A stretch of 64,000 nt of DNA from Thalia democratica (GCA_965202585.1 OZ241831.1:41850001-41914000), one strand, 5' to 3'; positions 40,621 through 64,000 are shown, counted from the first letter of the stretch. Numbers and translations are program-made. Notes: generated by a model from the sequence alone, not told the origin.

Positions 40621-43600
40621 TCATTTCTTTTTAGTTTTCTTTTTCATTTCTTGCTGTTTTCTGTTTTAAAATCAAATGTTAAAAGCAATTAGCTACAACT
40701 TTTAAAATGTAAAGTCTAAAAACCTACTTTTTTGTATTGTGAATAAAACTTTAAAGTTTGGTAATTAAAACGTTTTCGACAAAACTAGTTTAAAGTGTTC
40801 GTGAGTTCAAATGTAAATTGAAGTTTTTTAGCAAAGTATTAGTTTTAAGACTTATTAATAGCCATTTTTATTGCAATTTATATGAATTTTAAGCGAGTAA
40901 AATGTAAATTTATTAGCGTAATAGCAGAGTAAAAGCAATAAAAAAAAAATCTTACGACAAAATTTATAAAATTACCCACTGTATACTATTTTTGACTAAA
41001 AGTCTCTTATTTGTAAATAGAACTTTATAACTTTGACATTACTTAATAGTTTTTGAGTCATATATCAAAACTTTATGCTTATTTACCAATTTTATCTCGG
41101 TTGTAATCTAATTAAGAGTATTATTGTAATTATAAAACGATTTATTTATACAATTAAAAATTGTTGAGAGTCGAATTTTACTTTTTCTAAAAATCTTACT
41201 TCTTTCTTTCATCTTCGGTTTGAGGTCTTACACCATCGGTTTCCTTAAAAGTGTTGAAGTTTTAAAATTAAAAAGTGATATAAAGCATGTAAAGTTTCAG
41301 CTGCTTTACGAAAAAGGTTTTGTTTTTGGAGCAGTGTTTATTAAGTCACTAAAAATTGTGCACCAACCTCGCAAATAGCGTCTATTTCTGCTTGGTCGAG
41401 CTTTGTTACGTCGATCAGTACAGAATCGTCGAGTGTAACTGTTTAGAGCATATTTGAGTGAGCATTAAAAGTTTTGTTTGCATAAAATTAACGTATTTAC
41501 TGTTATTTGTAAGTTTGGTTTTATTTTCGTTCTTATGAACTTGGTACACAAGAATAACGGCAGCAATTTTTTGTTTCAACAATCGAACATCTTCAGACTC
41601 GTCGTCAATTTGGTCGGGTAGTTCGAAATTGTTTTCCACGTAATGCTGAAGTAAGTGTTCAGCAAACTAAAACAAAACACTTGTTAATATAAAAGTTTGT
41701 TTAAGAACAAAAAAAAGCAAAAATGCTCAAAATAAGTTTCCGTCTAAGGACTTCGGTTTGTGAAAAGAACTCTCGGTCATCTTAATAAACAGAAAAGAAG
41801 AAAATCATTAAATAAAGTAGTTGTGGAACTAACATTTTAGAGAACAAAGTTATTTGTTAAACAGATCAAAAAACTCGACTACGACTCGATGAGTATGTTT
41901 AATTACTACAAATCCTAACAACTCACTTAGCAGATTTATTTCTAAAATAGCTGTTTCAAAATTAAAACTAAGTCATTTATGCTTTTATATAGGTTACAGT
42001 TCATAAGACAAACTTATAATGATAGCAACAAAATTCCTTTGTAATACCTTCATGCACAGAACGCCCTCCAAAGACGCTTTCGTTTGCTCGTTTATCTTAT
42101 CAATCGCATCCCATTTAATTTCACTATATCTTTTGTTTATACTTTGGCATTGTGAGTTTACCGCATCTCTTCTGTTATTGTGGTGCATGTACGGAGACCA
42201 ACACTTTACTTCGTCAGAACCAGGTGTGTCAATCTAGTTTCAAGTTTAGAATTAAGTAAACTTCTAAAGTTGTGTTAAAAATAAAGTATAGGTGATATTA
42301 AAAACTAAGAAAACTGAAACACTGTATTAGTATGTTAACTCTAAAAAAAAGAATTATAACAGCATTTTTAACAGCCTAAGTTTAAAAAAAAACTTAGAAA
42401 AAAAAAGTAATTTTTGTAGTTTTATTAATAAAACGAACATTACTTGTTTTAATCTTATACTATTGGAAATTGGAGAAAGTTTATACTTAAGCACTTGAGT
42501 AAAAGCAATTGAGTACATTTGTTAAGCTATGTTTAAGATACTTAAATTTCAGTCTAAGTATTTCTTTATATATTTAATTTTAAAATCAAAATAAAAATGC
42601 TTGTGGTTTTATAACATTTAACTTTTCTTGAAGTTGTTTACTTACTATTTAGAATTAAATTTTAAAACTTGACAAGTAAAATATTTATAACTTATTGACA
42701 AATGTAAAATAAAAACTTGTAAGAAAATATATTATAGAAAGTATTAAACTAGATTCAAATTCTCAAACTAATTGAAAAAGTTATATAGTATGCCTAGTAG
42801 ACTGAAACTACTTATAAGATCAAACTTCAATAAAGTTTTTGAATAAATAAACCTCAACAGTTCTTATTAAGAGTTTAGAATTTTAATTGAATATATATAT
42901 ATATACTAAACTATCTAGCAGTTTTTTTTTAGAAATTTGTATAAATAGATATTAAAAAACAATATATAAAGTTTTAATCAGTTGACCGTTTTAAATGCTT
43001 TAACGTATGTTTAATTTACATGCGCAAAAAATAAGGCTGCGCGACAATTCTAATTCGGACATATTAACTCTGACAATTCAAATTCTTAAAAAACTTTTAA
43101 AGGGTCACAAGTTAAAACATGTTATTATTTGAAAAAAATGCGTATTTATGTCTAACTAACACCTAGAAACTTTTTTTCTTGAATATTTTTGAATATTTTT
43201 AAAGATACACAAAAAATGTTTTAAACACAACTATTTAAAGATTAGAAATAATATTATGCTAAATGAGATCGTAGCGAAGCAAGTTCACTAGAATAAATGA
43301 TAAAATAATTTCACAGCACTCTTATTTTATTAAATTAATATATGTTTCTATGTGTTAACAAGTTACAATTTAGGACACATAAACATATGTAAGTTTAATA
43401 AAGAAAGAGTACTGTGAAAAATTGTTATTATTTTTATAACTATCTTATTCTTTTTAGTAATTTTAAAAACTCTATTTTATTTTGTTTTCAACAAAAATAA
43501 TTGTTTGTAGTTATTATTTAAACATTTATACACATACTGATTTTTTTAAAAACATACCCTTTTTCTAATATTTTTTCTTTATTTGAAATTTCTGAATTAA

Positions 43601-46600
43601 AATTGTCATGTAACCAAAAATTAGTTGTCAAAAATTAATAATCTCTACAAATTGCTAACCATCAAGACATATTCTGAATTCTTAGAGCTTTTAGTGTTGC
43701 TTTCGCTTTTCAGATCTATCAACTTGAAAGATATGTTTATGTTGTCATGATTTTCGCTGTTAAGTATACACTTCATCAGGTGTATGTAGAATTCTATCAA
43801 TTTTTTCGACGGATTGTTGTTCAAGGTTGCGAAATCTTTCTTCATCAGGTATAAGCTCTCATTTTTGTATTTTACTCCCGCTACTAAACATCTATCACCT
43901 AAGATTTCTTTGGCAGCCTTTACTTTTTCCTTGACCTATATTTTTTTGATAATTTATCTTAACTAGTATGAGATTTTTATCTAAAAATTTAAAACTAAAA
44001 ATGATAAGATGCTATCTGTTTTCAATTAAATGTTTGTAAATTGATCAATCACTATGTATATATTTTTTATAATATACAGTTTCAATTAGATAAATACGAT
44101 TAGGGATATTAGCTATGGATAGTATTTTGAGACTTATTTTTTTTGTTTACAAGTACTTATTTTTAACACAATTTAATAACTTATTTTCGTTTTCTCACTT
44201 ACTTAGATAAAATATTAATTAAACTTAAAATGAAAAAAAAGCTGTATTGAGCTTTTCTCGGTTTTTAAAAATATATTAAAGTAAAAAACATGCAATTATA
44301 ACTTTTTGAAACTCACTGTTTTAAACTTTTTTTCTTCATTTATGGTCTTTATATATCTACCTGCAAATTAAAACGATAAAATATAGGATAATAGTTTGCA
44401 ATAATAGTTTTTTTGACTTTTTGTTTAAACTTAAAAAAAATTAAAACTAAAACGTTCTGAAATTCAAATTTTAATTTCTTGTTATGCTGGAAGAGTCTGA
44501 TAACCTTTGAAAATATACTTAATTGAATTACAAAAAAGCGCTCAAAACATATAGGTTTAGGACATAGTACACGAAGAAATTTTAGGTTATCGAGCCATAC
44601 ACCACGGATACGTTTTAACGTCTTGTCCAGGACAAATTGTTAAAAAAAAGATTAATACTTACTTAATTTCATCATTTCAAGCTCATTGGCCACACTCGTA
44701 TCTTTCTTAGTGATTGCGTTTCTATCAGGATTGTTCATAAAACTTTCGTCTAAATAGTAAGAGTAAAATAGTAAGAAACTGTAAACACAGTTTATTATCT
44801 GATGCTACGTTACAAAATATTAAAATAGTAATTTCTAAGTTGAACTTATAGGTCAGTGTAGTAATAAAAATAAAATTTATTGATAAGAAATTTTTGTGTT
44901 TCAAAATTCTTAATAAAATAAATTTTAAAGCGTATAATTAAAATTAAACTTTAAATTTACTTTTTTTAGTAAAGCTCTGTCTTAAAGCACCCATTATTTT
45001 TGTTAAATCAGTTTTTTATGAATTATTTGTACAAGATTTTATCAAAAAAAAAAGAATCGAGTTTAGTAACTTTTTCTACGTATAATCTAACCTTTTGCTT
45101 TATACAAAATATTTAAATCATAAGTGTAAATAACTGTATCATTAAATTTGCAAGAAGAAACTTTTGTTCAGCGTCATTTTGCACGAGGTGTCAGTTTTGA
45201 AACTTGTGCATGAAAGGTAACTTTTGCACGACGGGTAATTATTTTACAATAAGTCAATTTTTCACAAGAGTAAATAAATAAAAATATAAGTAAAGAATGA
45301 TATAACGAAAGTTAACGATAGTAAGGGTTAGGGGTAACAGTGAAAAAAAAGTAAGAAAAAAATATATAAAACAAATAAAACACTGATAATATTTACCGAC
45401 CAAGGGTATGGTAAGATTGATAATTAATAAAAAGATAAAGTTAGAATAGTAATAAGAAAAAATTAAAAAGTTACTGACCAAGGTTAAGGTTCAGAGGTAA
45501 CAGTGATGGTAAAAATACAAAAAAGTAAAAAAATAATTTTAAAAACAGTAAAATAAGCAAGTAAGAATAACCTGTGCGAAATTGACGCTGTACAAAAGTT
45601 TCTTCTTGCATACTTGATAATACATTTTTTTACAGTAATGATTTTAAATAGTAGGTATAAAGCAAAAGTTCTTTAGGTAAGTTTAATTTTTCCGGTACAC
45701 ATGTATAAAAATCTAAATATAAAAAAAATGATTCAAGAAATGAAAAACTTTTTACTTTTATTTGTTACAAGCATAAAAAATAAATAAGCATAAACAGTGT
45801 ACAGTGTATATTTATTATTAAACTTTCTAAAGTAAAGTTAAAAAATTTTTTTTTTTTGCATATGCTCGTAGATATCTTAATAGATTGATACTCGTATTTA
45901 TATAAAGTAATCTTCCTCTTAAGAACGCATTTTGAACAGCCAACAGGTAGTATGTAGCTAAAAACTATCATTCTAAATGAAAAACTGCATTTCGAGCACA
46001 AACATTTAGTCTTAATAGCGCGAGCTCAATAGAAATAATACTTTAAAATTATTTCAATAACAAATTTTCATCGCAAAAATTATCAAGTTTTAAGATACAG
46101 TGTTTTTAGTTCTCGTATAAATTTAACCTGGATAGCTACCATTAAACAGTTTATCTTCACTTATATTCTCTGTTTTGGATGTGTGCAAAAAGGTGGTCTA
46201 AGATAAATTTTATTTCTAATACATTGATAAACACAGCACAATGAAACTGTGACTTTTGTAAAACAAGTTATTTTTGTAGCTACTTTTTTTATCGACAAAT
46301 AAATTTTCAACAAGACAAATACTTAAAGCATCAAATAACTTAATACTCTAGTTAAACCGACTTTTTTCAGTGACTGCGGGTAGTTTCATATCGTCTGCCT
46401 GTTTTTTTTTAATGTTGAACTAATTAATTTACAGGATTAAATGTATTAACACAACAGCAAAGCTTTAAAAAAACAATTTAGAGTTATCAAAATATCTTCA
46501 AAGCATTTTTAAATTTTATAATTTATATTTATTTTATCCACTTTAAAATAAACTAATATAACTCTGCTCCATTTAAAACAGTTTAAAGAGCTTCAGATAA

Positions 46601-49600
46601 AAAGTTTTTTTTTTATAATTTATATTTTAAAGTTTATTTAAACTAATATTTAAAGTTCAAGCTAACTAAAACTTCATCTGCTTTACTGTCGTCGAAATCT
46701 TTTGGTTTAACTAAGAAAGGAAACGTTTTCTTCAGTTGATTAGGACCTTTTGTAATAAAAATAAAGTTATTGTTTAATACCTATATTTCATGGTTTCATT
46801 AAAAAATACCAACTACTTTTTAACCTAAAATTTAGTGTTTTACAAAATTTTTATTTTTACTCATATCATGATTATTGCAAGTCTCGTTTTCATTCAAGAT
46901 ATATATACATAAATGTTGTTATACTTATTATATATAAAACACCATTCTTAATTCGGTGAAAACTGTTTAAACGCATAAAGACATGAGTTAAAAAAAAAAA
47001 AGATAAATTTTTGAAAAGAAAACTTTACTGTGTAACTTATTATTAAGGTCAACAAAAAAGTAAACTTATGTATAAAGATAGATAAAACCTTTATTTTTAA
47101 TTCAATAATATCCTTAATTACACAAGTTAGTAAACCACATGTATTTAAACTTAGAGTGTTATCCTAAAAATTATTAAATAGATAGTTCGGTGACATTAAA
47201 GGTAAATATCATAGTTCTTTATTACTGTACCAATTTTTTTTTATGTAGCTCGAAGTCAAAGTTATACTAGCATAAACGTTTTGCATCCTATAAATAAATA
47301 TGAAAGTAAGTTATATTTTGAGAACTTCATAGATCAGACAGGCTAAAATTTTTAGTTATAAACTTTAAATAAATTAGTTTAAAATTTAAATTCTAAAAAT
47401 TGATTTTGATAGAATAAAAACTAAATTAAAGTGTTTTTTTATATCATTAAGATGAGTTATATGGTAAATATTTATTTTAAACTTTAATTAAGAAATAAAA
47501 ACAAAACAAAATTTTTTAAATCTTTAAAAAGTATTTTATTTATTAAGAAGACACAATACAATGTTGATGGTTATGTTTTGATTGTTTCTTTTTTTGCTAA
47601 TGTTGGTTATAGTTTAACTTACATGTACTATATTTAGCTCACTTTACTTTGATAATAAGTTTTTATAACCTATTTTGCAGAAATTAATACATTTTCAATT
47701 TCTTTAAGCTCATGAATTTAAATCAAAAGTATAATTAAAGCAAAAGAAAAACTCTTAGCTAAAGTAGAAAAGGGTTTAAAGCATTTACAAAATCACTTTT
47801 TTCTCGGACAAGTAGATTGTAGGAGTTAAGTCTTTTAAATTTTTAAAGGTATTGAATTTTGTTAATTATAAACCGGCAACAAATAATTTCGAAATTCAAC
47901 CTAAAAATTGGGAAGCTTTGATTCTACAAGCAATATGAGAATGTGTTGCTTTTGGTCCATTCAGGTACACGTGTTCAAAAATATATTTCATAGAATATTC
48001 ATAATCACCAACAGGCATCAAAAGTTCTTTTAAATAATTTTCATACAACTGACCCAAAAACTGCAATGCGTTATTGTTTTATTAAGTATTCGTTTGTACT
48101 AAGCTATTATACAATGTACATCTATTTACTAGAAAGAGAATAATTAGGAGAAAAACTAGAGAACAGGGTTTCCCAAAAACAGGCAATATTTCCCCGATGT
48201 GGGTGGTTTTTGACTAACAGGCATTAATTAGAAAGGAGGTAAACATGCAAATATAAAGTTAAGTAAAAAAAGGGTCTAAATCTAACAAAGAGGGCTATAC
48301 ATTTTTTTTTACTTTGTTAAGTAAGCAATTGCAAAAATGAGTTTAGGAAACCCTGGTTTAGAATACTAGGTCTTTATTAAGTTAGCAGTAATAGTTACTG
48401 ACAATCAGAAAGTTTCTATAACCTCAGTTACTGAGGGTAAACTAAAACAAATATAGTTTCAACTGGTTTAAACACCTGAATGTACGTGAATCTTGCTGGT
48501 TCGAACTGTTTCTTGCTGAAAACGAACTCATCAAAAAAAATACGACTAGAGTGACTGACCTGAAAAAATAATAAGTGACATTGAGAAAGAAAAAAAAAAA
48601 CAGGTACCAGCAAAACCTTCATTTAAATTAGTCATTGTTATATAACTATATAAAAAGCAAACTTACTTTTATACGAAATTCGTGCAACGTTTCATCGTCT
48701 TCACCAAGCAAACTAATTTCAAAGTCTTTGTGTTCTGGGTAGCACTTCTTAAGAAATTGATGATAATAACCAACCAAAGCTAGAGTTGGATTTGTATACA
48801 AAGAATCAAAATCCTCAGTGCTTAAAATAACTCGAGTTTTATTATCCACGAACAATTGCAACTCCAGCTCGTCTGGGTGGCTAGCTTGAAACTGATAGAA
48901 AACAATGTGTTTTTTAAGCTCGCGTAAACTGTTTTCAACAAAGTAATGATATTTTTAACTTACAATTACGTTTTTCTTATGGTCAGCTAGCCATGTGAAA
49001 AATTCATCTGTAATAAAAGTGATTTGGTTGTGTTAAAGGAACTAAAACAAAAACCCATGTTTAAAACGGTTTAGTTCGACAAACATGTTCATATCTACCA
49101 CAGTTAGGCTAGTTTCTTTATGCTAAATACATATCAACAGGTTGTGTAACAAAAAGGTAAAGTAATAGTAAAGTGTTTTCACATTATGCAACTAAAATAC
49201 ATTTTAACCTGGTGTGTTGCCACTAAATACTTCAGTTTCAGGTCTTTTAGTTTCTTTAGCACGTTGTTCTGTTGTGAAAGACTTGTCAATAGGAATGAAA
49301 GTTAGGCAAATATTTTGATAACTGATAATTTAAAAACAAAAAATTTCATACAACTGCTTTTCTAGTTGTGTAGCTAATATAAAAAGCGCTTTTTTTAATT
49401 GTAAAATAAAATAGGTAAAACCTAAAACATGCATTTTTTGGACGGTAGAGGAAATAGTTTGGCTAAGATAAATTTGAACTTCTATATGTTGTTCTTTGTA
49501 GCTAAATAAGTCAAAATTTATATATATATATATTTATTTTTAGTAACAAAACTGACTTTGCTTCTTCATCCTTGACTCTCTTTTTTCTTTAATTTTATCT

Positions 49601-52600
49601 GTTAAAAGTACTTTTTTAATAGAAAGGGTTTAATTAACAAATATTCTAAACTATAAATATAAACTGTGTAACAACCTATATATTTATAAAAGTCCAAAAT
49701 TGATACTATGAAAACTTTAATTAGCAGCTATTCCTTTTCAAAACAAATAATTAGTTGTATTTATAAACACATATTTGAAATTTAGTTCACACATCACGCT
49801 CTTAAATAAAAAAAATATTCAGAATAGAGAGGTAGTTGCTATTTTTGCGAGACACTCTTTAGTAACATAAGTACATAAACTTTTTGTTTAATGTACTATA
49901 TATTTAAACGAAGGTCTCAAAAACTCATTTTCACAAACGTAACTTTGACGGAAATTTAAAAATTGTAGCCTCTTTATTAGTAAATTACCATTTATATTTT
50001 TTGCTGCCTTATAAACAACGCCCCCTTTTAACAAGAATTTTCCTAAAATGGACAATACTAATTAAAATTATTTTTTTTAAATTGAAGTTTGTAAAAAAAA
50101 ACTTATGATAACATATTTTTTTAAATATATAATACGTAAGCAAGACGTTCCCAATTTATTTTATCAAACCGACTTTAAAAAAACAACATTAATAATGATA
50201 TCTATTTTAGGGAAATTTAGTTTAAAAGGGAGCGTTATTTAGTTAGGCGGCGAAAAATACAAACGGTGATTTATTATTTAAGAGACTTTAATAATACATT
50301 ATATAAATTAAAGATTATATAGTACACAAGCAAAACATTTTAAAATAATTGAACGAAACCTTTTAAGCTATAATTCATAGAAAGCTAGTAAAAAATAATA
50401 AATTTTGCTAGAAATTAAATTCAAATTATGAGTTTTAAATATTTCAAAATTATAATTAAAAATAAAAACTGAAGATTACAAAATATCTAAACATTTTTAA
50501 TAATGTAGTCAGATTAAAAGGTACCTTTTATTGACTGCTTTAATATTTGATAGTCTTCGGTTTCGATTGAAGTACTACTGAGTTGTTTATCTAAAAAGTC
50601 ATTTATACTTACAATAAAAGTTTTAAATTTTTAAACTAGCCATATGTTTTATCGTTTTATACTAAGCAGCAACAGTATATTTATTTATTTTTTGGTAAAA
50701 AAACTAAGAATATTATAAAAACAGAGTTTTTTTTATTGATAATTAAATCTGTTATAATTTCAATGATAGGTATAAAACTATTACTAGGTACGAAATATGT
50801 AAAAAAGCAATTTTACACTTTTAAAACTGATCATTTTTTCTCAGTTGTAAACACCTACTTAACGCCTTTGTAAAAATTATACTTTGATAAACAAAATTAA
50901 TACATATACAGAAAAAATTGCTTAGATAAATTAAAAAAGGAAAATGCATTATATATTTATTAATTATAAAAAAACACTCGAACTTATATGCACTTTGCTT
51001 TGAGTCAATCATTCTGCTAAGAGTGTTGATTAAACACAAAAATTAAACTTGATTTTTAAATTTTCACATCTGTTTCTTTACAAAAGATAGACTAATCTGA
51101 TTTATAATAGTCATATACTGCTTAAGTTTTATCTAAAGTTTAATAAATTTTTGCAAATTTTAGGTAGATTACGGTTACATAAATAAAGTTTTACTTTGAT
51201 TTTCCTCTGTGTCAGTTTTTGCTTCAAATGTTTCGTTAGGAAGACTACATTTTCCATTACTTTTAGAGTCATTTGTAGTTTCTTAAAAACAATTAATCAA
51301 GATAATTTTTTTAAATATTTAATTATTTCTACTACTAATTATGAACAATGTATCTCGTAAAGCATAGTGTCTAAAAGTATTTCTTACTCTTAAGTTTTGT
51401 TTTTTTCTTCGACTTAATTGTAGGACTACTGCTTTTTTCTTGAGGTAATTTAGAGAAAACTTTTCTTGTTTCTTGGTCTTGGTTACTTGAATTTTCCTCA
51501 GTAGTTTTTATCTTTGAAACTTTCTTAGCTAATTCATTTATAAATGTTGTATTCGGGTTTTATTTAGCAAATTAATAAATGTTTCTAAACAAAACCTGTA
51601 TATTTGAAACTTTTAAAGCACTTGAATGTGCAAAAATTGTTATAATTACAGTAAATAAACATACATTTTTTCTTTAAAGTCATAAAAAAAAATTATAAAC
51701 TCGAAACTAAAACTAAACTATAAAACAACATCAAACACCAGACAAATATCATTAACGAAAATTTTTAACTTAGTTTATTTTGACTTTTTGTTTGTTCTTA
51801 CTTACATAAATCTATTAAATATAAAAATTAAGCTTCAGTTTAAAAATAATTTTTTTCACAAAAATTATCAGTAAACACGTATAAATGCCTTAACTTAAAC
51901 ATACTATAAGGGCATAGGAGATTAGACACTTTTTACGTGATGATGTAATATAATGATTTTCATTTTCGCTAACAGTTCAATAGGATCTTTATGGAGGTCT
52001 AAGTTAAAATGGTAAAAAAAATTATATTAAGTTAAAAAATATCGTCTCCTACAATTTTTATGCACTCTGTATTAAATTTTTAAAATGTAATCTTAACTTT
52101 TAATAAATAATACTAATGTAGGACTAAAAAAGCACTGGGTGAAACAATTTGCACACTAATTTTCTTTATTGTCCTCCTAGACAAGACTTAAAAGTACACA
52201 AGTGGTGTGCGACTCGATAACCGAAAGGTTTTTCGTGCACCAGGTCCCAAGACCAATTATTTAAAGCGCTTTTTTGATGTTATTACAATATTAACCTGTC
52301 ATTTGTTTTTACAGGGCTTTCTTGGACTGTTTTAAACAAGTTAACACAGTTCAGCAGAGTCCTGTAAAAAAAAAGTAAGTACTGCAAGAAAAAAAAGGAG
52401 TAAAATTAGGTGAATACGTGCGTTCACTTTAGAAAAACTAAAATTACTTTAGATTAATCGTCAGTACTAGATACAATAAATACTATGGAACTAAAAAAGT
52501 GAATCAAAAGATCAATATGATTTAGTTAATAAGTTTAGATACTAAAGTACTATAAAATGCCATACAATTATCATGAAAAACATGTTATTGTAGTTAAACA

Positions 52601-55600
52601 TGTTTAAAGTTATACAAAATAGGAGTCGAATTAAACAACATATATTGTATTGTATACTATTTTATGTTAGTTTATAATGCTTATAGATTATCTTTAGTGA
52701 AGATCTATTTTCATCTACGTTATCTTCTATTCTTTTATTGCAGTAAGTATTATTTTTTTATTTACGACTCTATGGAGCTAAGTTAACTTGTTTATCACAG
52801 AAAAAACATACGTCAGTTTAATTAAGAAAAAGTACTGTGCAAATTGTTTTTTTTACATATTCCAGCGAGATTGTTTTGATAGGGCCTTTATTAACAAACG
52901 ATTAGCTTGCAGTTTTGAATACTATAGTAAAAATATGTTTTTTCTTAATAAAAAAAAAAATATTAAGTCATTTTGTTTTTTTTAAATCGTAACAATAGAA
53001 TTTTTTTTGTATGATGGAAGAAAAATTTCTAAAAACTTAAGGTCAATAACTTAAAAAAAAATATGGTTGAATTTTAATTTTCTAGTATATTAACCATAAA
53101 AAATTTGGTCGATACGTTCATATCTGCAACTTTTTACAAGAACGACTATACATCTAAATTATGTCACATTTCTAAAAACTGACTTATAGTTGAAACTCTA
53201 TGGTTTAACATAAGAACCAATGTTAGTTTTTGTAAAACAAACCCTCATACCCTTATGCCTTTAAAAATAACTAGTAGTCAATTGATGTTTTCGTTGTTTC
53301 TAGTACAGAAACAAATTATTACGATTACTATTACGATTACTTTTTACGAATGTAAAACTTTAACATCGATCGTTTGCGACAAGATTTACAAAAGAGTACG
53401 TAAATTACTTAATACAAAAAAAAAAGCTACTAACCATCAAAACTTTTATTACAGATGTTTTGTATCATTGTTTCCATCAGACATCTCTTGCTTGATTTTG
53501 TATCTAAATGAAAACAGTAAATAGAAACAAAATATTTGGTTTTTTTCGTTTGGATATATCATAAGTGTTTACAGCCTAATAATAAATACAGGTATTAAAG
53601 ATGTTGATAAATAGGATACAAATACAACTTTTAAATACTTAAATTTTGAAATAATTTTTAGTCTATTAAAGACGAGAGTAGTTCTAGGAAGTATTTAAAT
53701 CTTTAATATGCTTACCAACTGGTAGGTTATTTTTGAATAGAGAATTATCTAAATACAATTTTACGACAAATTCTTCAAAGCAGGGTTTCCAAAGTTATGG
53801 GCCATGACAGATACTCAGCGGGCCATGAGCAGCAAAGGGGCCAAAGGGGAGCCATGTAGTTAAGGAGGCACAGGGGATCATAAGGTCATAATTTGAAACT
53901 TAGATATTCTAAAATTGTTGTTGTAAAGAAAAAAAAAGGTTTTGGGTGCTTTTAATGGTAGTTTTTTAAGTAAGTTTGTTGAAGGATGCAATAGCTTTTT
54001 TAATTTCTTTAAAGGGAGCCATTTGGAAAAAAGTTTGGGAAACCCTGCTTTAAAATTTAATATGAATTTAAACGCTTATTCTAGATATGTTGAAACTAAA
54101 TGGAACTCATCAAATTACTTAATTGCCATGCAAACTAGAATGCTTTTTTAACTTAAATGTGTTTTTAATAAATATACTATTTTATTTAGGTATCTATTAA
54201 AATACTAGAAAAAAAACTTTAGGAGAGTAAATACAAATAATTAACTTAATTATATTAATTTGTCACTATAAATAAAGAATCTTAACATTATTTTACACCT
54301 ACATAGTAGTTAAACAAATACTCCTAAAAATTATAATTTTAGCTCTTTACAGTAAGCGGCGATATATATTTCGAAATGTTTTAAGTTTTAAATATATCAG
54401 TGTTATTATGTAGTTAATGTTTTACATTTTTTTGGTAAATTATAGTTTTTAGTGTACTTATTATCTACACATATGTATTTAAATCAATAAGAGCAGTTGA
54501 TTATAATTAGTTGATTATATTTTGTTTTAAAATTTCTAATAAAACATAAACTATACTAATTAGGAATATTAGTAGATAATTTTTTTGAAGGCCAAAAAAG
54601 ACTAAATGTAAAGCTTAAAAACTGATTAAAAAAATTCTAAAAACCATAACTAATTGTAATAGCATTACTAAAAAATAAATGTTAAAACGTAAATAACTTT
54701 TACCACTTCCGTCTTTTTCATAATACTGGTCTTCAATTTCTATATTATAATCTTCAATATCACTATTATTATCTTTACTATAATTATTCTTATCTTCAAT
54801 ATCACTATTATTATCTTCAATGTCATTATTTTTAACTTCGATATCATTTTTCTTATCTTCAATATCATTATTCTTATCTTCAATATCCATTTTGTTATGT
54901 TCAGTATCACTATTATTATCTTCAAAATCATTATTCTTATCTTCAATATCCATTTCGTTATGTTCAGTATCACTATCATTATCTTTAATATCAGCATTCT
55001 TATCTTCAATATTTATAATGTTATCTTCAATATCATTATTAGTGTTTTCAATATCACTATTTTTACTTTTAACTTCATTATTTTTGGCTTTAATAGTATC
55101 ATTATGAACACCAGTATCCTTAATATGACCTTCTGTATTTTGATTTTTGTCTTCTGTTTCTTGATTCTGATCTTCATTCTTTTGGTATTGGTATTTAGTA
55201 GCTTGATTCTGTTCTTTACGGCCTTGTTCGATGAGATTTCTTAGCTCATCTTTTACTTGTTTACAAGTATCTTCCGGCAGTCGAAATTCATCATCAAGTT
55301 TTAGTTCACCTTTAAGCGCCTTCTCCGTCAGTTTAAGTGCAAGTTCTTTCAGTAGATCTGAAAATTAAATCAAGAAAGTCAGTTTTTATTTTGCATACTT
55401 TTTTAAGGCAGCAACAATAAAATATTATCTTTAATAAAACTATTGTAGAAACCTGAGATTACTTTTTTTAATTACCTATAGAATTTTTATTCTATATATG
55501 AAAACAATTATATTTCAAACAAAAAAAAACAAAGTTTTTATTTTATACTCATGTTGTTTGGATTAAAAAATAACTTTGTAGATTATTTTCTAAACATAAT

Positions 55601-58600
55601 TGTTTATATATGTAGTAACAAGGATAAGACAAAATGATCACAATAAATAGTTGACATACCTTAGAACGATTTAAAAATTTAAATATTATTTTATTCTTAC
55701 TATATAATTTTTATAAGAATGAATAATATCGCATTTTACATATACAGTTAAAAACTTTTTTAACCTTTTTTGTTATCATTGTTACTTGATATCAAAAAAG
55801 TTATAAACGAAATAAAGAAGTTTAATAAAAATATTAAATATGTAAACATTTTATTTAAGGTTTTGATAACTATGATAAGTAATTTTGTTTTCACAATTAA
55901 ACATTTTATTTTCTTAAAGCTACTTTTGAATTTACAAAACAAAAACTAAACAAAAAATAAAACACTAAAAATACTTTTTTTTTTTCTAAAAAGATAATTT
56001 AATCAACTACTTATATCTACAAAGGTAATAATTAACCTTTGTTTTCATTACTATTTTTCATTTTTACAACTATTTGATCGAGGAATTTGTGAAACTTTTC
56101 AATAACTTTTTCGCAAAAACTTTCATCAGAAATATTTTCGTTGTTGTCCAAATTAAAATTATTGTTTTGAGTTTTGCTATAAAATTCCTGAGCAATCGTT
56201 TTGGAATTGTCTAGTTAATAAATCGAATAAATATGTTAGTTTTTTAAAGTAGATTCAAACCCCCTCCTATAAAATTTTTTTGTCTAAGGTAAAAAAAAAA
56301 TAAACTACTAAGTAAAAGTAAAACTTATAACTTTATACCTAAAAGTAAAGCGATAGAAAAATGATTAATTTGTTGATTAATTACTTAACAAGCATAGTTT
56401 TACAATTTAATGAACATATTAAATAAAGTTTGAAAACAAGAATAAAGTAGATTATTTAGAGAAAAGTAATTATTGATTGTAACATTAATTTTAGCGTAGG
56501 AAAGTATAATTTACAGTTAAAAAAAAAATGTTTTGCTTACCTCTTTTAAATGATTGATCCTTTAATTCTGAAAAACAAAATAAAGCACTAATTTTTTAAA
56601 ATCCTACTTTAAATAAAAAAAGCTTTGCTTACTTTACTATAATACAAGCGTAAATATAGTTTTAAATAACTTATATATTAGATAGAGCAATATATACTTT
56701 AGAAATTTATACTAAGCTTTTGTTTTAAACTCGTTATCATTTCTTAAAGTACTTTAAAAAGCGTCGTCAGCAAGCAAGTAAATAGCAACTAAAATAACAA
56801 AAAAAATTATGCAGTAGTTTATAAAATAAAGAGTACATGTTGTATCTGTAAAAAAACTTTATTATGGTTTGTTTACTTTAATAAAATCATAAATAACGGT
56901 TAACATACAAAAGGAAGATTTAATAAACTTAAATATTATAATACTATTACAGTAAATAACTCATTTTCATCTTTAAAAAATGGCTAAAGACATAAAAAAT
57001 CAAAATAGCTTCCGAAATTTATTGGTAAAAATTTTGTCATAGATTTATTTTGGCATGGAAACGTATTAAAAACTTTTAAGGTACAATTTTATCGTTTTTC
57101 AACTAAAAAAATATTGATTTGGAAAAGTAGTTCGCTTTGATACTTAATGTAGATTGTTCCGTAAAATGCTAACACAGAACACAAAAATTACATACACCTT
57201 TATGATATTTCTAATGACCATTCTTTATTTCAATAACTAACTAGTTTATAAACGTAACATAAAATAACCAACTTAGTTTATGATAAATAGTAGCTTTACC
57301 ATTGGAAAAGATTCTTTCAAAACTTTTAGTACCAAATTTAATTCTACAAATTTTAATTATAACTAAGTTTTTCAAATGTTTGTACACAGCATTACATTAG
57401 TATTTACATGGAATAAAAATTTTGTTCTCGAGAAAAGCAATTGCTATTAAAAAGCAAAACAAAATGTACTTAAGCTTAAACTGTTTTACAGATGAATACG
57501 TTTAAATTGAAGTTTATTAAGTAATAAAATTGTCACCTCTTTCTTCTTTGCTACGTCGCTCGAGTTTGCCCAACAAGCTGTAAAAATCTTCAGTTACTTT
57601 GCTGCAAAACTCTTCGGCAAGCTTTATGGTTGCCACAGACTTGAGTTCATTGTTTTGATTTTTGCTGTAATATTGCTGAACAACTGCTTTGGCATTATCT
57701 GTTTGCATGGTAGCTTGGTAAAATTTACAAATAAACGTATCATTTCAACTGTTTTAACTTAGACTTTAAGTAACATATTTTAAAACACTTAACAACCTAA
57801 GCAAGTAGATAATTTTACTATATTTAAATAAACCATTAGTTTTTTCACACAATTTCGGATGTACAACCAACTCTTCATCTTTTCTAATTGTTTTTATTGA
57901 TTTGTAGAAAACTTTATCTCCTTCTACGTAAGCCACACAATTCGCTTTTCTATGCATTTTTACTCATTGTTTTACTTTAGTAACATTTTTTGCTACACTA
58001 TGCACTGCATTACTAAACAATTTTATAATAAGTTAGCATTTGTAGTTAGTTTATTTTTGAAAAGTTCAGTCTCGAAAGTGTACTTAGTTTTTATCATCTA
58101 AAACTAAAAATAATTTTCAAACTTATTTTTTCGAACTCTGGTAAGCCAGTTGCTAGAATAACAATACCTCCCATTTACTGTTATTGAATCACCGCTTGTG
58201 TTTTTGAACTGTTTTATTATAACAAAATAAAATATATATTTCTTAATTTAATAAAGTTAGCTTAAAGTCATTTTTTCAGAGTTAGGTCATAAAACATCTA
58301 AACAACTTTAGTAACTGAAAAGCAAACATACTGAAAATAAAAATTGTATGATCCTTAAAGTTTAAAAGTTTTATTTTACATACCAAACTAATTAAAAATA
58401 TAAAATCCATACAACAAACCAACCTTCCAGTACATGTTGTCTGTTTGTCCGACTTTTCTGCTTTCGCTTCCATTGTACGGGCCAAGCTTGGTGTGCGCGC
58501 CAACTTCTTCAAACGCGACCACGCAGTGCTCGTTGTCCGAGTTGCGCATCAGCCTGAACTCTTTCGGGCAAGTGCTGAAAATTTCCATGCCGTTCTTGCT

Positions 58601-59210
58601 TGTGCCCTGAAATTATATTTTTATTTAATGGCGTTACTAAATCACGTGAGTAAATAAATTCAAATCTTAACCTGAGCAACTACGTTTTCTATTGTTCTTT
58701 TTTCTTGCACCCAGTTCTGGCCAGCTATCATAATTTATAAAAAGTTAACGAGTATAGTTATGGTTTGCAATTTTTATATGAAATTATATATTATAGTTTG
58801 GTTAGTGAATTATTTATTCAAAACAATATTCGATTAAGAAAAAAATATGTTGCAAAAAAAAGTTTTTATTTTAAGCTTTTCGAGTTTTAGTTCATTAGAT
58901 GCTTATTTTAGCTATTTAAAAAGATTTTTAATTAACTTGGTAAGTTTCCATACTAATTAAGTTAATGTTATTTAAAAAAACTTAAAGAAACATTTTTTAA
59001 ACAACTCACAATGATTTTCGATTTTCAATTCTGAGTTCAGATTTAATTTATTCGAAGTATTGTAGTCAACAACTACCGACTCATAACAGTCTCCGTAGCT
59101 CCTGAGATTACTGTTATTTACTTTCAGTCGTTTTTCTATGTCGCATAATGAGTTCTTTAATTTATTTTCAAATTTATCCGCTGCTATTCCGCACAAATTA
59201 CATGTGTTAT
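40621..59210 (-). CDS. Multi-exon gene: PRDM-type PR/SET domain, acidic heptad repeat, two Ulp1/SENP-like (C48 fold) pseudo-protease domains, basic C-terminal tail; 5' end unresolved
   Basis: Phase-consistent GT-AG chain (minus strand): 59210-59010, 58724-58672, 58606-58424, 58208-58123, 57949-57834, 57713-57537, 56567-56541, 55357-54704, 53503-53435, 51528-51388, 51281-51195, 50590-50525, 49598-49557, 49373-49355 (tentative), 49281-49209, 48891-48667, 48559-48476, 48060-47901, 47831-47797, 46882-46861 (tentative), 46746-46673, 46398-46362, 45957-45892, 44749-44663, 44360-44317, 43935-43660, 42233-42048, 41645-41501, 41438-41368, 41243-41200, 40660-40621 (KQQEMKKKTKKK-TGA). Total 3590 nt, at least 1195 aa. 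The first exon starts in phase 1, so more exons lie upstream (candidate 61311-61270). The domain exons are well supported; the short low-complexity exons are less certain, and I assume all exons belong to one gene. Confidence 0.65.
41501..43935 (-). CDS. Second Ulp1/SENP-like (peptidase C48) domain, catalytic Cys and His replaced
   Basis: Exons 43935-43660, 42233-42048, 41645-41501. Against recalled SENP1: SLYLMKKDFATLNN..LIEFYIHLM / LTITRKDIQTLNH..IINFYMNML; EYVLMID / HWCLAVVD; INEQTKASLEGVLCMKH / IPQQMNGSDCGMFACKY (ungapped); DVRLLKQKIAAVIL / HMPYFRKRMVWEIL. Confidence 0.7.
45135..45624. mobile_element. MITE with TIRs of about 55 bp
   Basis: TGTATCATTAAATTTGCAAGAAGAAACTTTTGTTCAGCGTCATTTTGCAC matches the reverse complement of GTGCGAAATTGACGCTGTACAAAAGTTTCTTCTTGCATACTTGATAATACA; internal direct repeats (GGTAACAGTGA, GACCAAGG). 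Superfamily unresolved. Confidence 0.7.
47797..49281 (-). CDS. First (more degenerate) Ulp1/SENP-like domain
   Basis: RVILSTEDFDSLYTNPTLALVGYYHQFL is clearly homologous to LYLMKKDFATLNNNPSKKLIEFYIHLM of the second domain. It is followed by HEFRIKVSHSSRIFFD and ends SHIACRIKASQFL, in the order expected for a C48 fold. The C-terminal half aligns weakly. Confidence 0.5.
48164..48355. mobile_element. hAT-like MITE, short
   Basis: TIRs CAGGGTTTCCCA / TAGGAAACCCTG; TSD poorly conserved. Confidence 0.6.
49965..50290. mobile_element. MITE with imperfect TIRs of about 90 bp (possibly Tc1/pogo-derived)
   Basis: GCCTCTTTATTAGTAAATTACCATTTATATTTTTTGCTGCCTTATAAACAACGCCCCC matches the reverse complement of GGGAGCGTTATTTAGTTAGGCGGCGAAAAATACAAACGGTGATTTATTATTTAAGAGAC. 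Confidence 0.7.
51907..52140. mobile_element. MITE family B-related partial copy
   Basis: Starts TAAGGGCATAGGAG and contains TATCGTCTCCTAC; the second terminus was not found. Confidence 0.4.
53781..54047. mobile_element. hAT (Charlie-like) MITE
   Basis: TIRs CAGGGTTTCCAAAGTT / AAGTTTGGGAAACCCTG, degenerate 8-bp flanks CTTCAAAG / CTTTAAAA, internal GGGCCA/GGGAGCCA motifs. Confidence 0.75.
54720..55070 (-). repeat. Coding 21-nt minisatellite (consensus GATATTGAAGATAAGAATAAT, DIEDKNN) within the 654-nt exon 55357-54704
   Basis: Roughly 16-17 degenerate 7-aa units (DIEDKNN, DIEDNNS, DTEHNKM). This explains the five overlapping ORF-track entries here; only the D/E/N-rich minus frame joins the flanking splice sites in phase. 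Confidence 0.9.
57834..58606 (-). CDS. PR/SET (PRDM-family) domain, three exons
   Basis: CPKEFRLMRNSDNEHCVVAFEEVGAHTKLGPYNG...MYWK|F...VNGRYCYSSNWLTRVRKNK|KANCVAYVEGDKVFYKSIKTIRKDEELVVHP aligns with the recalled PRDM pattern LP.GL..GVW....FGPY.G...WLI...VDG...ANWMRYVNCAR..QNLVAFQ...IFYR...I.PG.ELLVWY. Confidence 0.9.
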
Positions 59211-59440
59211 CTAAGAAATAGATTATAAGCATTTATTTTTTAATGATAAAAATAGACTGTTATTATTTTCGTTAGAATGTTTTTGAAAAAATTATTAAGG
59301 TTATTAATAAATTAAAATTATTATTATTTATTATAATTGATTAAGATTATCTTTGAAAAAGCATAGTTTTGGGTATTTGATACTTTAAGATTTCTAGACT
59401 ATGAATGATAAGCTTTTTATGATTTGAAAAATCATTTTTT

Positions 59441-61860: not shown

Positions 61861-62753
61861 ATAAAATAAACATAAACGATGGACAACCTTAAGAAAATAC
61901 AATAATGCAAAAAATTATAAATGAATTCAAATTAAAATTAAAACTAAAAATGTATAGTGCTATTACTAGAGAATTACTTAACAAAATTAAAAGTTTTATA
62001 ATAATGAAAAAGACTTTTTTAAACTTTTATATATGCTTTATACTTACAATAGATGATTTGTTTTATATAGGTTTGGATTTAGCTTAAAAACACAAAACAA
62101 AATGGCGCTTAACAAATGAGGGTACAAGTAATAACAAAAGTAGAACTAAGTGATAAAAGAATTAATACGCTAAGTTTTAAAATAAAATTTCCTAAAGTGC
62201 GGGCAGGTGTAGAAGAGCTCTTGTCTTTTGTTTAGAATTCGTTTCTTATTAGCAAGTGCTATTTCTATTTTTTCCAAATTGCAAGTCTTACAGATTTTAC
62301 CTATATTCTTCATTTCCCTGATCTTGTGCATTATGCTCCATTTTAAATCGTAGCTGGTGTTATTGTTTTTTAAACTCCAAATGTACTTGGAAAGCTCTGT
62401 TCCCTTGTTATTTTCATTCTTAATATCGCTAATGTGCGCATACCATCTCTTTTTGAATTGGTTTCCTGTTGATCCTATGTATTCTTTTGTTTCGATCTGA
62501 CTGGTTATCGTCGCCTTATAAACAACATTCTCCTGCAAACATTTGCCACTTAAGGGGCAGGAGCCTTTGTCGCGGCAGTTGCACGTTTTTTCCTCTTGGT
62601 TGTTCTTATGATTCAGTTTGTTTAGTATCTTCCTATTGTGGGTATTTATTAGTGATTTGACATTATCCATACAACAGTATGATATTTTGCAATTACTTCT
62701 GTTGAAGATCTTTTTCATGCTCTCTGTTGTGAAATGTTTGTCAATTAGGTCTA
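61811..62753 (-). mobile_element. Penelope-like element (Naiad-type), 5'-truncated inverted copy: GIY-YIG endonuclease, 3' region and hammerhead
   Basis: ORF 62170-62718 contains CNC....CPL.GKCL, VVYKA, EYIGST...FKKRW..H, TELSKYIWSLK, CKTCNLEK, LNKRQEL...CPH, the Cys-rich GIY-YIG pattern of Naiad PLEs. The element may extend to about 61730. Confidence 0.9.
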
Positions 62754-62754
62754 G

Positions 62755-64000
62755 TACCTCGCAAACAATTGCTATATGCCATATAGAAAAGAAAACTCCT
62801 CAATCAGATATATCAGTAGTGACTCCAACCACCCGAAGATAATCAAGAAAAACTTACCCAAAATGATTGAGAAAAGACTAAATAGATTGACCACAGACCT
62901 AAGAACCTTTGATAATGCAAAACATAGCTACCAAATTGCACTGCTCCAATCCAACTTCAAACACAAGCTTGAATATGAAAACAAAACCAACCCTGTCGAC
63001 AAGAAGAAACGTAAACGAACAAGAAAAATTATGTATTTTAATCCCCCATACTGCCAGTCAGTAAAAACCAACATTGGGGGGAGATTTTTAGACCTAATTG
63101 ACAAACATTTCACAACAGAGAGCATGAAAAAGATCTTCAACAGAAGTAATTGCAAAATATCATACTGTTGTATGGATAATGTCAAATCACTAATAAATAC
63201 CCACAATAGGAAGATACTACACAAACTGAATCATAAGAACAACCAAGAGGAAAAAACGTGCAACTGCCGCGACAAAGGCTCCTGCCCCTTAAGTGGCAAA
63301 TGTTTGTAGGAGAATGTTGTTTATAAGGCGACGATAACCAGTCAGATCGAAACAAAAGAATACATAGGATCAACAGGAAACCAATTCAAAAAGAGATGGT
63401 ATGCGCACATTAGCGATATTAAGAATGAAAATAACAAGGGAACAGAGCTTTCCAAGTACATTTGGAGTTTAAAAAACAATAACACCAGCTACGATTTAAA
63501 ATGGAGCATAATGCACAAGATCAGGGAAATGAAGAATATAGGTAAAATCTGTAAGACTTGCAATTTGGAAAAAATAGAAATAGCACTTGCTAATAAGAAA
63601 CGAATTCTAAACAAAAGACAAGAGCTCTTCTACACCTGCCCGCACTTTAGGAAATTTTATTTTAAAACTTAGCGTATTAATTCTTTTATCACTTAGTTCT
63701 ACTTTTGTTATTACTTGTACCCTCATTTGTTAAGCGCCATTTTGTTTTGTGTTTTTAAGCTAAATCCAAACCTATATAAAACAAATCATCTATTGTAAGT
63801 ATAAAGCATATTTAAAAGTTTAAAAAAGTCTTTTTAATTATTATAAAACTTTTAATTTTGTTAAGTAATTCTCTAGTAATAGCACTATACATTTTTAATT
63901 TTAATTTTAATTTGAATTCATTTATAATTTTTTGCATTATTGTATTTTCTTAAGTTTGTCCATCGTCTTATGTTTATTTTATTTTACAGGCCTGAAGATC
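62755..64000 (+). mobile_element. Penelope-like element (Naiad-type), 5'-truncated forward copy: RT C-terminus/thumb plus GIY-YIG, with a premature stop
   Basis: YMPYRKENSSIRYISSDSNHPKIIKKNLP (PLE thumb, SNHP motif), YFNPPY, then the same endonuclease. CAG>TAG at 63307-63309; natural stop at 63670-63672. Positions 63089-64000 are the reverse complement of 61843-62753. It runs off the window inside the ribozyme core (..AGGCCTGAAGATC). Confidence 0.9.

Follow-up and report, generated by a model that had tools for sequence, protein, structure and literature searches.

Does the minus strand of this stretch of the Thalia democratica genome encode a single protein in which a PR/SET domain is joined to a relative of the Ulp1/SENP (C48) proteases, as an initial annotation of the DNA had proposed, or do these parts belong to separate genes? 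The stretch analysed, hereafter the window, is the 64-kb segment G000:C7:41850001-41914000 of an AT-rich genome of 800 Mb, and its GC content is 22-38% in 2-kb bins. Based on the data reported here, positions 59232-41415 of the minus strand are confirmed as a multi-exon coding region. With evenly balanced confidence, we suggest that this region is one lineage-specific gene in which a PR/SET domain and a catalytically dead Ulp1/SENP-like domain are combined in a nuclear, non-enzymatic scaffold. The narrower claim, i.e. that the PR/SET half and the half with modules A and B form a single gene, is likely.

The gene model was built on GT-AG splice sites and phase continuity. The resulting stop-free and phase-consistent chain runs from an ATG at 59232 to a stop codon at 41417-41415 and codes for 1066, 1094 or 1154 amino acids depending on optional exons. 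RNA contigs are from the marine metatranscriptome run X1 (three 2025 runs also contain window sequence); paralogues were surveyed in the same genome using tblastn with the window exons and profiles of exons A1 and B1; and C977 is an unplaced contig with a second copy of the gene. In the order of transcription, the exons are:

59010-59232 (-): E1, start codon ATG 59232 and Cys-rich N-terminus; open segment with ATG, donor GTGAGT at 59009, 1 base carried over
58672-58724 (-): E1b, small linking exon, phase 1 to 0; repairs the frame between E1 and PR1; stretch conserved in the C5:17.67 Mb paralogue
58424-58606 (-): PR1, PR/SET exon 1, phase 0-0; PRDM2_PR profile 9-50, 12.1 bits
58123-58208 (-): PR2, PR/SET exon 2, mid-domain, NWLTRVRK motif; identity to a paralogue, phase fits the neighbours
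57834-57949 (-): PR3, PR/SET exon 3, C-terminal strands; PRDM2_PR profile 80-113, 24.6 bits, and SET, 14 bits
57537-57713 (-): R1, helical repeat, phase 1-1; 36% identity to R2 over 59 amino acids, conserved in paralogues
56037-56210 (-): R2, helical repeat, phase 1-1; likeness to R1, conserved in paralogues
54704-55357 (-): acidic/coiled exon; Tandem Repeats Finder, RNA contigs on 54704-54874, donor 54704 joined to 53503
53435-53503 (-): e53, phase 1-1; RNA contig record 3, only the in-phase frame is open
51388-51528 (-): e51a, Lys/Ser-rich, phase 1-1; RNA contig record 1, the single open frame is the in-phase one
51195-51281 (-): e51b, phase 1-1; RNA contig record 1, canonical splice sites
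50525-50590 (-): e50, phase 1-1; RNA contig record 1, present only in the window locus and the near copy C977
49540-49598 (-): L', Lys/Arg-rich, either a 42-nucleotide (nt) cassette (49598-49557) or a terminal exon to TAA 49542-49540; acceptor AG 49600-49599, depth bin, homology to paralogues
49209-49281 (-): X, linker exon, phase 0 to 1; acceptor, donor and frame conserved in three paralogous copies
48667-48884 (-): A1, module A, homologous to the N-terminal part of B1; 14 paralogous places genome-wide, acceptor in phase with e50 and with X
48476-48559 (-): A1b, tentative, phase 0-0; canonical sites, 33% identity over 46 amino acids to the same-position block of one paralogue
47901-48060 (-): A2, module A, phase 0 to 1; open frame, canonical sites, 99-100% identity in C977
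46667-46746 (-): L, linker exon between A and B, phase 1 to 0; the most coding-looking among many frame-restoring candidates, picked by eye
43660-43935 (-): B1, domain B, strand-helix start with motif PSKKLIEFY; 13 places genome-wide, all in paralogous loci, partial AlphaFold model
42048-42233 (-): B2, domain B, ends in the invariant A-x-LEG-(V/I)-x-CMK; alignment, hhalign against C48 subfamily F2
41415-41666 (-): B3, domain B, helix after the lost active site and stop codon; alignment, hhalign, ratio of nonsynonymous to synonymous substitution rates (dN/dS)

Some of these boundaries involved a choice. For E1b, three candidate ends (58684, 58681 and 58672) from the common start 58724 all restore the frame, and 58672 was picked because it has the donor GTTAAG. 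The frame of X is fixed by a 3-nt indel among the three paralogous copies together with stops in the other frames. A1b differs from C977 by a 3-nt indel and the frame is open with or without it, while e51a has a 21-nt in-frame deletion in one paralogue. No counterpart of e50 was found in the C5 paralogues, and no RNA junction was seen for exon L. The initial annotation had also described a lysine-rich tail; the C-terminal end is indeed lysine-rich, but the most lysine-rich stretches lie in the middle of the protein, in the exons that start at 51528 and 49598.

What identifies the first half of this chain? Pfam profiles were searched against single exon pieces (E-value at most 1) and in a six-frame scan of the whole genome. 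PRDM2_PR matches the pieces 58612-58391 (12.1 bits) and 57963-57769 (24.6 bits), the two matches being collinear and summing to 36.7 bits, and the six-frame scan gives a PR/SET-type match at 57856-57954, inside PR3. The same two-part match is repeated in the paralogue at C5:17.67 Mb with 18.0 and 22.6 bits. PR2, for which no Pfam match was found with the exon alone, carries the motif NW-x-x-R-V and is 75% identical over 28 amino acids to this paralogue, and the best solved relative of PR3 is the PR domain of PRDM10, a weak match (E 0.69). It counts against the assignment that each of the two pieces is individually below the PRDM2_PR cut-off of 27 bits. With its three exons, its collinear profile pieces and their recurrence in a paralogue, the PR/SET domain that had been proposed is nevertheless retained. 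The same is true of the acidic heptad repeat, for which Tandem Repeats Finder reports a 21-nt (7-amino-acid) unit in 16 copies at 54730-55065 within an open segment of 249 amino acids, and of the lack of C2H2 fingers, the pattern C-x2-4-C-x12-H-x3-5-H being absent from all six frames of the 64-kb window.

The crucial question is how this half is connected to the downstream half. The initial annotation had treated 54704-49281 as one intron. This junction is out of phase: one base is carried over from 54704 while the exon at 49281 begins at phase 0, so that translation across the junction terminates after 8 codons. Moreover, the RNA contigs place exons inside the interval. In record 3, 54777-54704 is spliced to 53503-53440, and in record 1 (536 nt) 51528-51388, 51281-51195 and 50590-50525 are joined in series, with all junctions seen in RNA having AG/GT sites. 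Since the depth of 8.36 is seen at 53439 and is absent at 53470, the first 35 nt of record 1 appear to correspond to 53469-53435. In the four RNA exons downstream of the acidic exon the carried-over frame is open throughout, and in three of them it is the sole open frame. Because these exons are in frame, the supposed intron contains at least four coding exons. Thus, the phase-consistent minus-strand chain of the initial annotation survives as an open chain, but with different exons and a different connection at its centre.

The RNA linkage spans only the acidic exon to 50525, a part of the single transcript predicted earlier. The X1 contigs were placed on 49000-54900, a range that does not include exon A1, and among the contig records in this range none bridges 50525 to X or A1, which speaks against a continuous transcript. 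X1 covers approximately 12% of the words in 54600-58700 and approximately 10% of those in 41400-49400; because these shares are close to the exon shares of the two stretches, both halves are present as processed RNA in the same sample. As a separate observation, an X1 contig with a loose end at 51183 continues into sequence that has exact matches elsewhere in the genome, at C2:30636236 and C2:30883249, from which it follows that X1 contains Thalia democratica and that some X1 contigs on the window derive from other loci. This loose end was dismissed as information on the PR/SET gene because it maps to another chromosome; for three other contig loose ends no match was found inside the window.

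Beyond 50525, two routes have to be weighed. In the first, e50 is spliced directly to A1 at 48884, skipping L' and X, and the frame remains open, giving 1066 amino acids or, with A1b, 1094. The second runs through L' and X. An exon start at 49598 agrees with the depth bin above 49590, in which 8 nt are covered, and L' is homologous to a Lys/Arg-rich phase 1-to-0 exon common to two paralogues, with a 9-nt indel. In these two paralogues the L'-like exon links an e51b-like exon to X and then A1 in frame (with 9-nt and 3-nt indels). Several observations in the window itself weigh against this route and, more generally, against the joining of the two halves. In the window copy and in C977, the sole usable donor of L', at 49557, leaves phase 1, X is then out of frame, and a stop is reached at residue 699; in other words, L' is here unable to restore phase 0 for X. 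Reading through L' ends at TAA 49542-49540 after 695 amino acids, with an AATAAA just after it. A candidate exon at 49493-49429 would mend the phase and give 1154 amino acids, but it is only 89% identical to C977 with a 2-column gap. Because of this low identity and the gap it is not exon-like, and we do not rely on it.

The same observations can be read as evidence for two adjacent genes, a PR/SET-acidic gene ending in the exon at 49598 and a separate X-A-B gene with its own promoter and first exon, the paralogues carrying both. The in-phase stop and the AATAAA right after 49598 are what would be expected of the end of a gene, and the interval 49699-49540 is 98-100% identical in C977. Also, X is in frame only behind an exon that ends in phase 0, as no RNA-supported exon does, and the arrays at C6:65.4 Mb are without a detectable PR exon nearby. 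By contrast, X and A1 both lack an in-frame Met, and no convincing first exon is present in the 260 nt at 49540-49281; e50 reaches A1 (48884) in frame; and in two paralogues the chain is in phase via L' and X. The depth pattern also bears on this, though not decisively. The hidden 207-nt tail of record 1 corresponds to depth bins of 8, 102 and 68 nt at 8.36, which roughly fit 49598-49557 plus 49493-49429 plus X and misfit a read-through of 207 nt from 49598, although the tail could equally be read as A1. Taking these points together with the collinearity of the A/B arrays with the N-terminal exons, conserved on a single strand across four to five deep paralogues, we regard two adjacent genes as somewhat unlikely and a single gene as the probable arrangement.

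This collinearity emerges from the family as a whole. The 14 places of A1 and the 13 places of B1 in the genome are all within a few collinear, intron-split paralogous gene loci, and the family comprises about six such loci. The C5:17.67 Mb locus has the window exon order on one strand, including all three PR exons. At C5:16.19 Mb (L033-L036, C5:16.195-16.235) and C5:14.65 Mb (L039-L042, C5:14.65-14.69) the exon order of the window is also kept, and A1 is found in tandem at a spacing of 3-7 kb, with four copies at C5:16.195-16.235 Mb and three at C5:14.65-14.69 Mb. E1 is conserved at 31-61% in seven other places of the genome, five of which are upstream, on the same strand, of an A/B array or PR exons. 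At the three C5 loci, B1 is preceded on its own strand by the E1-like exon at a distance of 21-26 kb (15 kb in the window); at C6:65.4 Mb, a weaker E1-like exon precedes the array by 44 kb. The copies at C5:17.67 and C6:65.4 Mb have a synonymous divergence of approximately 1.9 to saturated from the window copy. That four to five deep paralogues preserve the single-strand exon order over such divergence favours one transcription unit.

The second copy of the gene lies on G000:C977:1-15344 (the unplaced contig is 32.7 kb long), extends from E1 to A2 with the order kept, and is 80-100% identical to the window in a mosaic manner, which suggests a diverged haplotype or patchy gene conversion. A comparison of exon with intron identity to C977 as a test of selection was dropped because of this mosaic. 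Two further places, G000:C2:85116995-85118674 (-) and G000:C433:48265-50175 (+), appear to be more members as judged by E1-like, PR-like or R2-like exons alone, the former having no detectable A or B exon nearby.

The family is, at the same time, partly decaying. The loci at C5:16.19 and C5:14.65 Mb no longer have PR exons 1-2, E1 abutting a remnant of PR exon 3; one paralogue has a stop in its e51b-like exon and another has lost an acceptor. These losses count against the preferred model. They raise the question of whether the locus in the window, although transcribed, is itself in decay as part of a fast-evolving family, its downstream part no longer being translated, and the frame-broken L'-X route in the window copy and C977 would fit such a history. 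However, every exon of A and B has an open frame and intact splice sites, the exons occur in RNA, an in-frame route skipping L' and X exists, and the dN/dS of domain B is well below 1. Accordingly, we consider it very unlikely that the downstream part has fallen silent, and we return to the proposed single gene to ask what domain B is.

Domain B is approximately 210 amino acids long, which fits a C48 domain. For profile comparisons, spliced copies from five paralogues were aligned and compared using hhalign with alignments of C48 domains from the same genome. Against subfamily F2, whose six members all exceed the Pfam C48 cut-off, the score is 39.3 (P 3.6e-5, hhalign match probability 71.5%), while the scores of 100 column-shuffled versions of B averaged 14.1 (standard deviation 3.3, maximum 28.5), with none reaching 39.3. 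In a relaxed form the B-F2 alignment is collinear over 181 columns, only approximately 49 of which are confident. It places L-x-x-x-D-F-x-x-L ... L-I-E-F-Y on the Ulp1 strand-helix, S-E-Y-V-L opposite H-W-I-F-V, W-S-P opposite V-D-P, and the invariant A-x-L-E-G-V-x-C-M-K/F-A-E opposite the C-G-x-Y-C-I-x-Y-A-L helix. Of the triad, His is thus replaced in B by Glu (S-E-Y), Asp by Ser or Phe (W-S-P) and Cys by Glu (in the invariant L-E-G), the alignment being of low confidence at the first two of these positions; the oxyanion Gln at -6 is kept in two of the five copies, including that in the window. With Glu/Ser/Glu at the catalytic positions, B cannot be a protease. Among the paralogues, dN/dS of B is 0.24-0.48, and B is under purifying selection. 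These profile-level comparisons support that B is an Ulp1/SENP-like pseudo-protease.

Several searches weigh against this kinship. PF02902 (C48) matched none of the exon pieces, and of its 102 matches in the genome-wide scan none is inside the window; against all 27 in-genome C48 domains the hhalign result is P 0.019, centred exactly on the catalytic-Cys helix. Searches with B1 and B2 in ESM Atlas gave no usable match, the B1 profile found no meaningful match among PDB sequences, and phmmer comparisons of B with in-genome C48 were uninformative. B could instead be a lineage-specific alpha/beta domain that resembles Ulp1/SENP only through a short motif matched by chance: besides these negative searches, hhalign is significant against one six-member subfamily only, with approximately 49 confident columns, and no catalytic residue is retained. 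A chance match would, however, have to account for a score more than 10 units above all 100 shuffles, for a 181-column collinear relaxed alignment with both flanking motifs in the right order and spacing, and for a length that fits. Structure prediction adds to this. An AlphaFold model of exon B1 only (mean predicted local confidence, pLDDT, 61; residues 21-60 at 74-86) folds into a hairpin plus helix, and in Foldseek SENP1 and SENP2 have the top probabilities in a list of non-significant matches, 6 of the 21 listed rows being SENP1, SENP2 or SENP7. As they come from the N-terminal piece, an independent part of domain B, these predicted-structure matches are weak hints. Altogether, a chance likeness appears quite unlikely to us, and the degenerate C48 fold remains the preferred interpretation of B.

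The initial annotation had counted two homologous C48-like domains. Profile-profile comparison upholds this for B, albeit with no Pfam C48 match for either domain; module A (48884-47901) shares only the N-terminal part of B. It aligns only with the N-terminal 45 columns of B (hhalign P 2-3e-4) and with F2 at P 0.033 only when A1b is included, and no counterpart of the B2 and B3 profiles was found in it. Judged from these alignments, module A is a reduced relative of B and not a demonstrated second C48 domain.

How widely is this gene distributed? Among 1.84 billion representative proteins the B1 profile found no full-length relative, in agreement with the lineage specificity suggested earlier; its matches were only exon-sized fragments from the Tara Oceans metagenome (PRJEB4352) and one spurious repeat protein. 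A search for homologous proteins with A1 returned nothing, and neither did an exact-pattern scan of JGI metagenome contigs for exons X and B1. These searches support a restriction of the family to a single lineage of marine animals. From the metatranscriptome runs and the Tara Oceans fragments, the source is concluded to be a planktonic animal of the sea. The initial annotation had further considered that the protease part was domesticated from a DNA transposon, Ulp1-like domains being carried as cargo by Mutator, CACTA, Helitron and Zisupton elements. No transposase was found in the chain, and A1 and B1 occur only in the paralogous, intron-split gene loci, which is unlike a multi-copy element; terminal repeats were not searched for. 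B may have originated in a transposon, and it may bind SUMO.

Based on these findings, we suggest a model for the protein. The protein, of approximately 1070-1150 amino acids, would begin with a Cys-rich N-terminus followed by a finger-less, divergent PR/SET domain, two helical repeats and a coiled/acidic heptad region, and would continue with a Lys/Ser-rich linker that is likely a nuclear localisation signal, the reduced module A and the full-size C48-like domain B. The PR/SET surface would contact chromatin or a partner, while the dead protease fold of B could hold a SUMO-like or ubiquitin-like modifier, or another ligand, uncleaved. An analogy is provided by catalytically dead Ulp1(C580S), which strongly binds SUMO and SUMO conjugates without cleaving them (PMC3216068). 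In this model, we infer that both halves are in one mRNA, that B has a ligand and that the protein is nuclear. A more far-reaching version, which we consider unlikely as it stands, is that the genes form a family of chromatin proteins in which a dead SUMO-protease fold (one full and one to four reduced copies per gene) is combined with a finger-less PR/SET domain and an acidic repeat, and which would act as readers or traps bringing PR/SET to chromatin carrying SUMO-like modifications, the source of the fold being a C48 family that has multiplied in this genome.

If the fusion is true, it links PR/SET with the Ulp1/SENP fold, both familiar modules of chromatin biology, in an arrangement absent from the literature searched and from the 1.84 billion representative proteins, and it adds a case from animals in which a protease fold serves for binding and no longer for catalysis. 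What is new is how domains of known kinds are combined. The family also illustrates rapid turnover: PR exons have been lost, module A has been amplified and new cassette exons have been gained. For annotation, the lesson is that the C48-like part is overlooked altogether in six-frame Pfam scans.

The remainder of the window contains other features. On the plus strand, a multi-exon gene with GC-richer exons occupies 9775-33200, and because 16945-17229 matches Pfam Med12-LCEWAV (E 3.7e-11), this gene, upstream of the PR/SET gene and on the opposite strand, is taken to be a MED12 orthologue. At 62173-62799 (-) and 62755-63669 (+), two long inverted open frames with a common block Y-I-G-S-T ... 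R-W-Y-A-H (GIY-YIG-like) and no Pfam match are probably a mobile element; copies of the block with 32-43% identity are found in introns of the C5:14.65 and C6:65.4 Mb paralogues. Finally, 52152-52348, 53728-54121 and 44590-44650 are very high-copy repeats, with a summed contig depth in genomic runs of 47,000-570,000 versus approximately 100-1,200 nearby, and the repeat at 52.2 kb recurs at 44.6 kb, both being intronic in the PR/SET gene.

Compared with known systems, the gene resembles the PRDM family in its N-terminal PR-type SET domain, which is spread over three exons and matched by PRDM2_PR at both ends of the profile; the closest points of reference are the PR domains of PRDM10 and PRDM11. 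It differs from this family in that there is no C2H2 array in the window and the PR domain is very divergent, and no described PRDM member was found in which acidic repeats and C48-like modules follow the PR domain. Likewise, no PR/SET-Ulp1 protein was found in the literature. With Ulp1/SENP proteases, B shares a collinear arrangement of approximately 210 amino acids, the strand-helix motif at the N-terminus and a helix on which the catalytic Cys would normally be found; it differs from them in its replaced triad and in having deletions in the segment that separates the first helix from the strand of the His.

Within the same genome, the profile closest to B is that of the compact C48 subfamily F2 (C8:23-28, C1:29-31 and C6:75-81 Mb, C2, C4), whose numerous members keep His/Asp/Cys and are intronless single open reading frames, whereas B is intron-split, low-copy, dead and part of a multi-domain gene. 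Members of this subfamily at C6:75-81 Mb (for instance L064, C6:80041854-80043111) are single-exon frames of 840-913 amino acids with a weak C48 domain and Pro-rich repeats, and they are interspersed with at least 16 PRDM9-like PR/SET copies (C6:78.3-80.5 Mb). The nearest precedent for the overall design is SETMAR, in which a SET-type domain is found in one gene with a domain probably from a mobile or expanded element (PMC9062482). In SETMAR, however, the partner is a transposase, the gene is a primate gene and the fusion is documented by transcripts.

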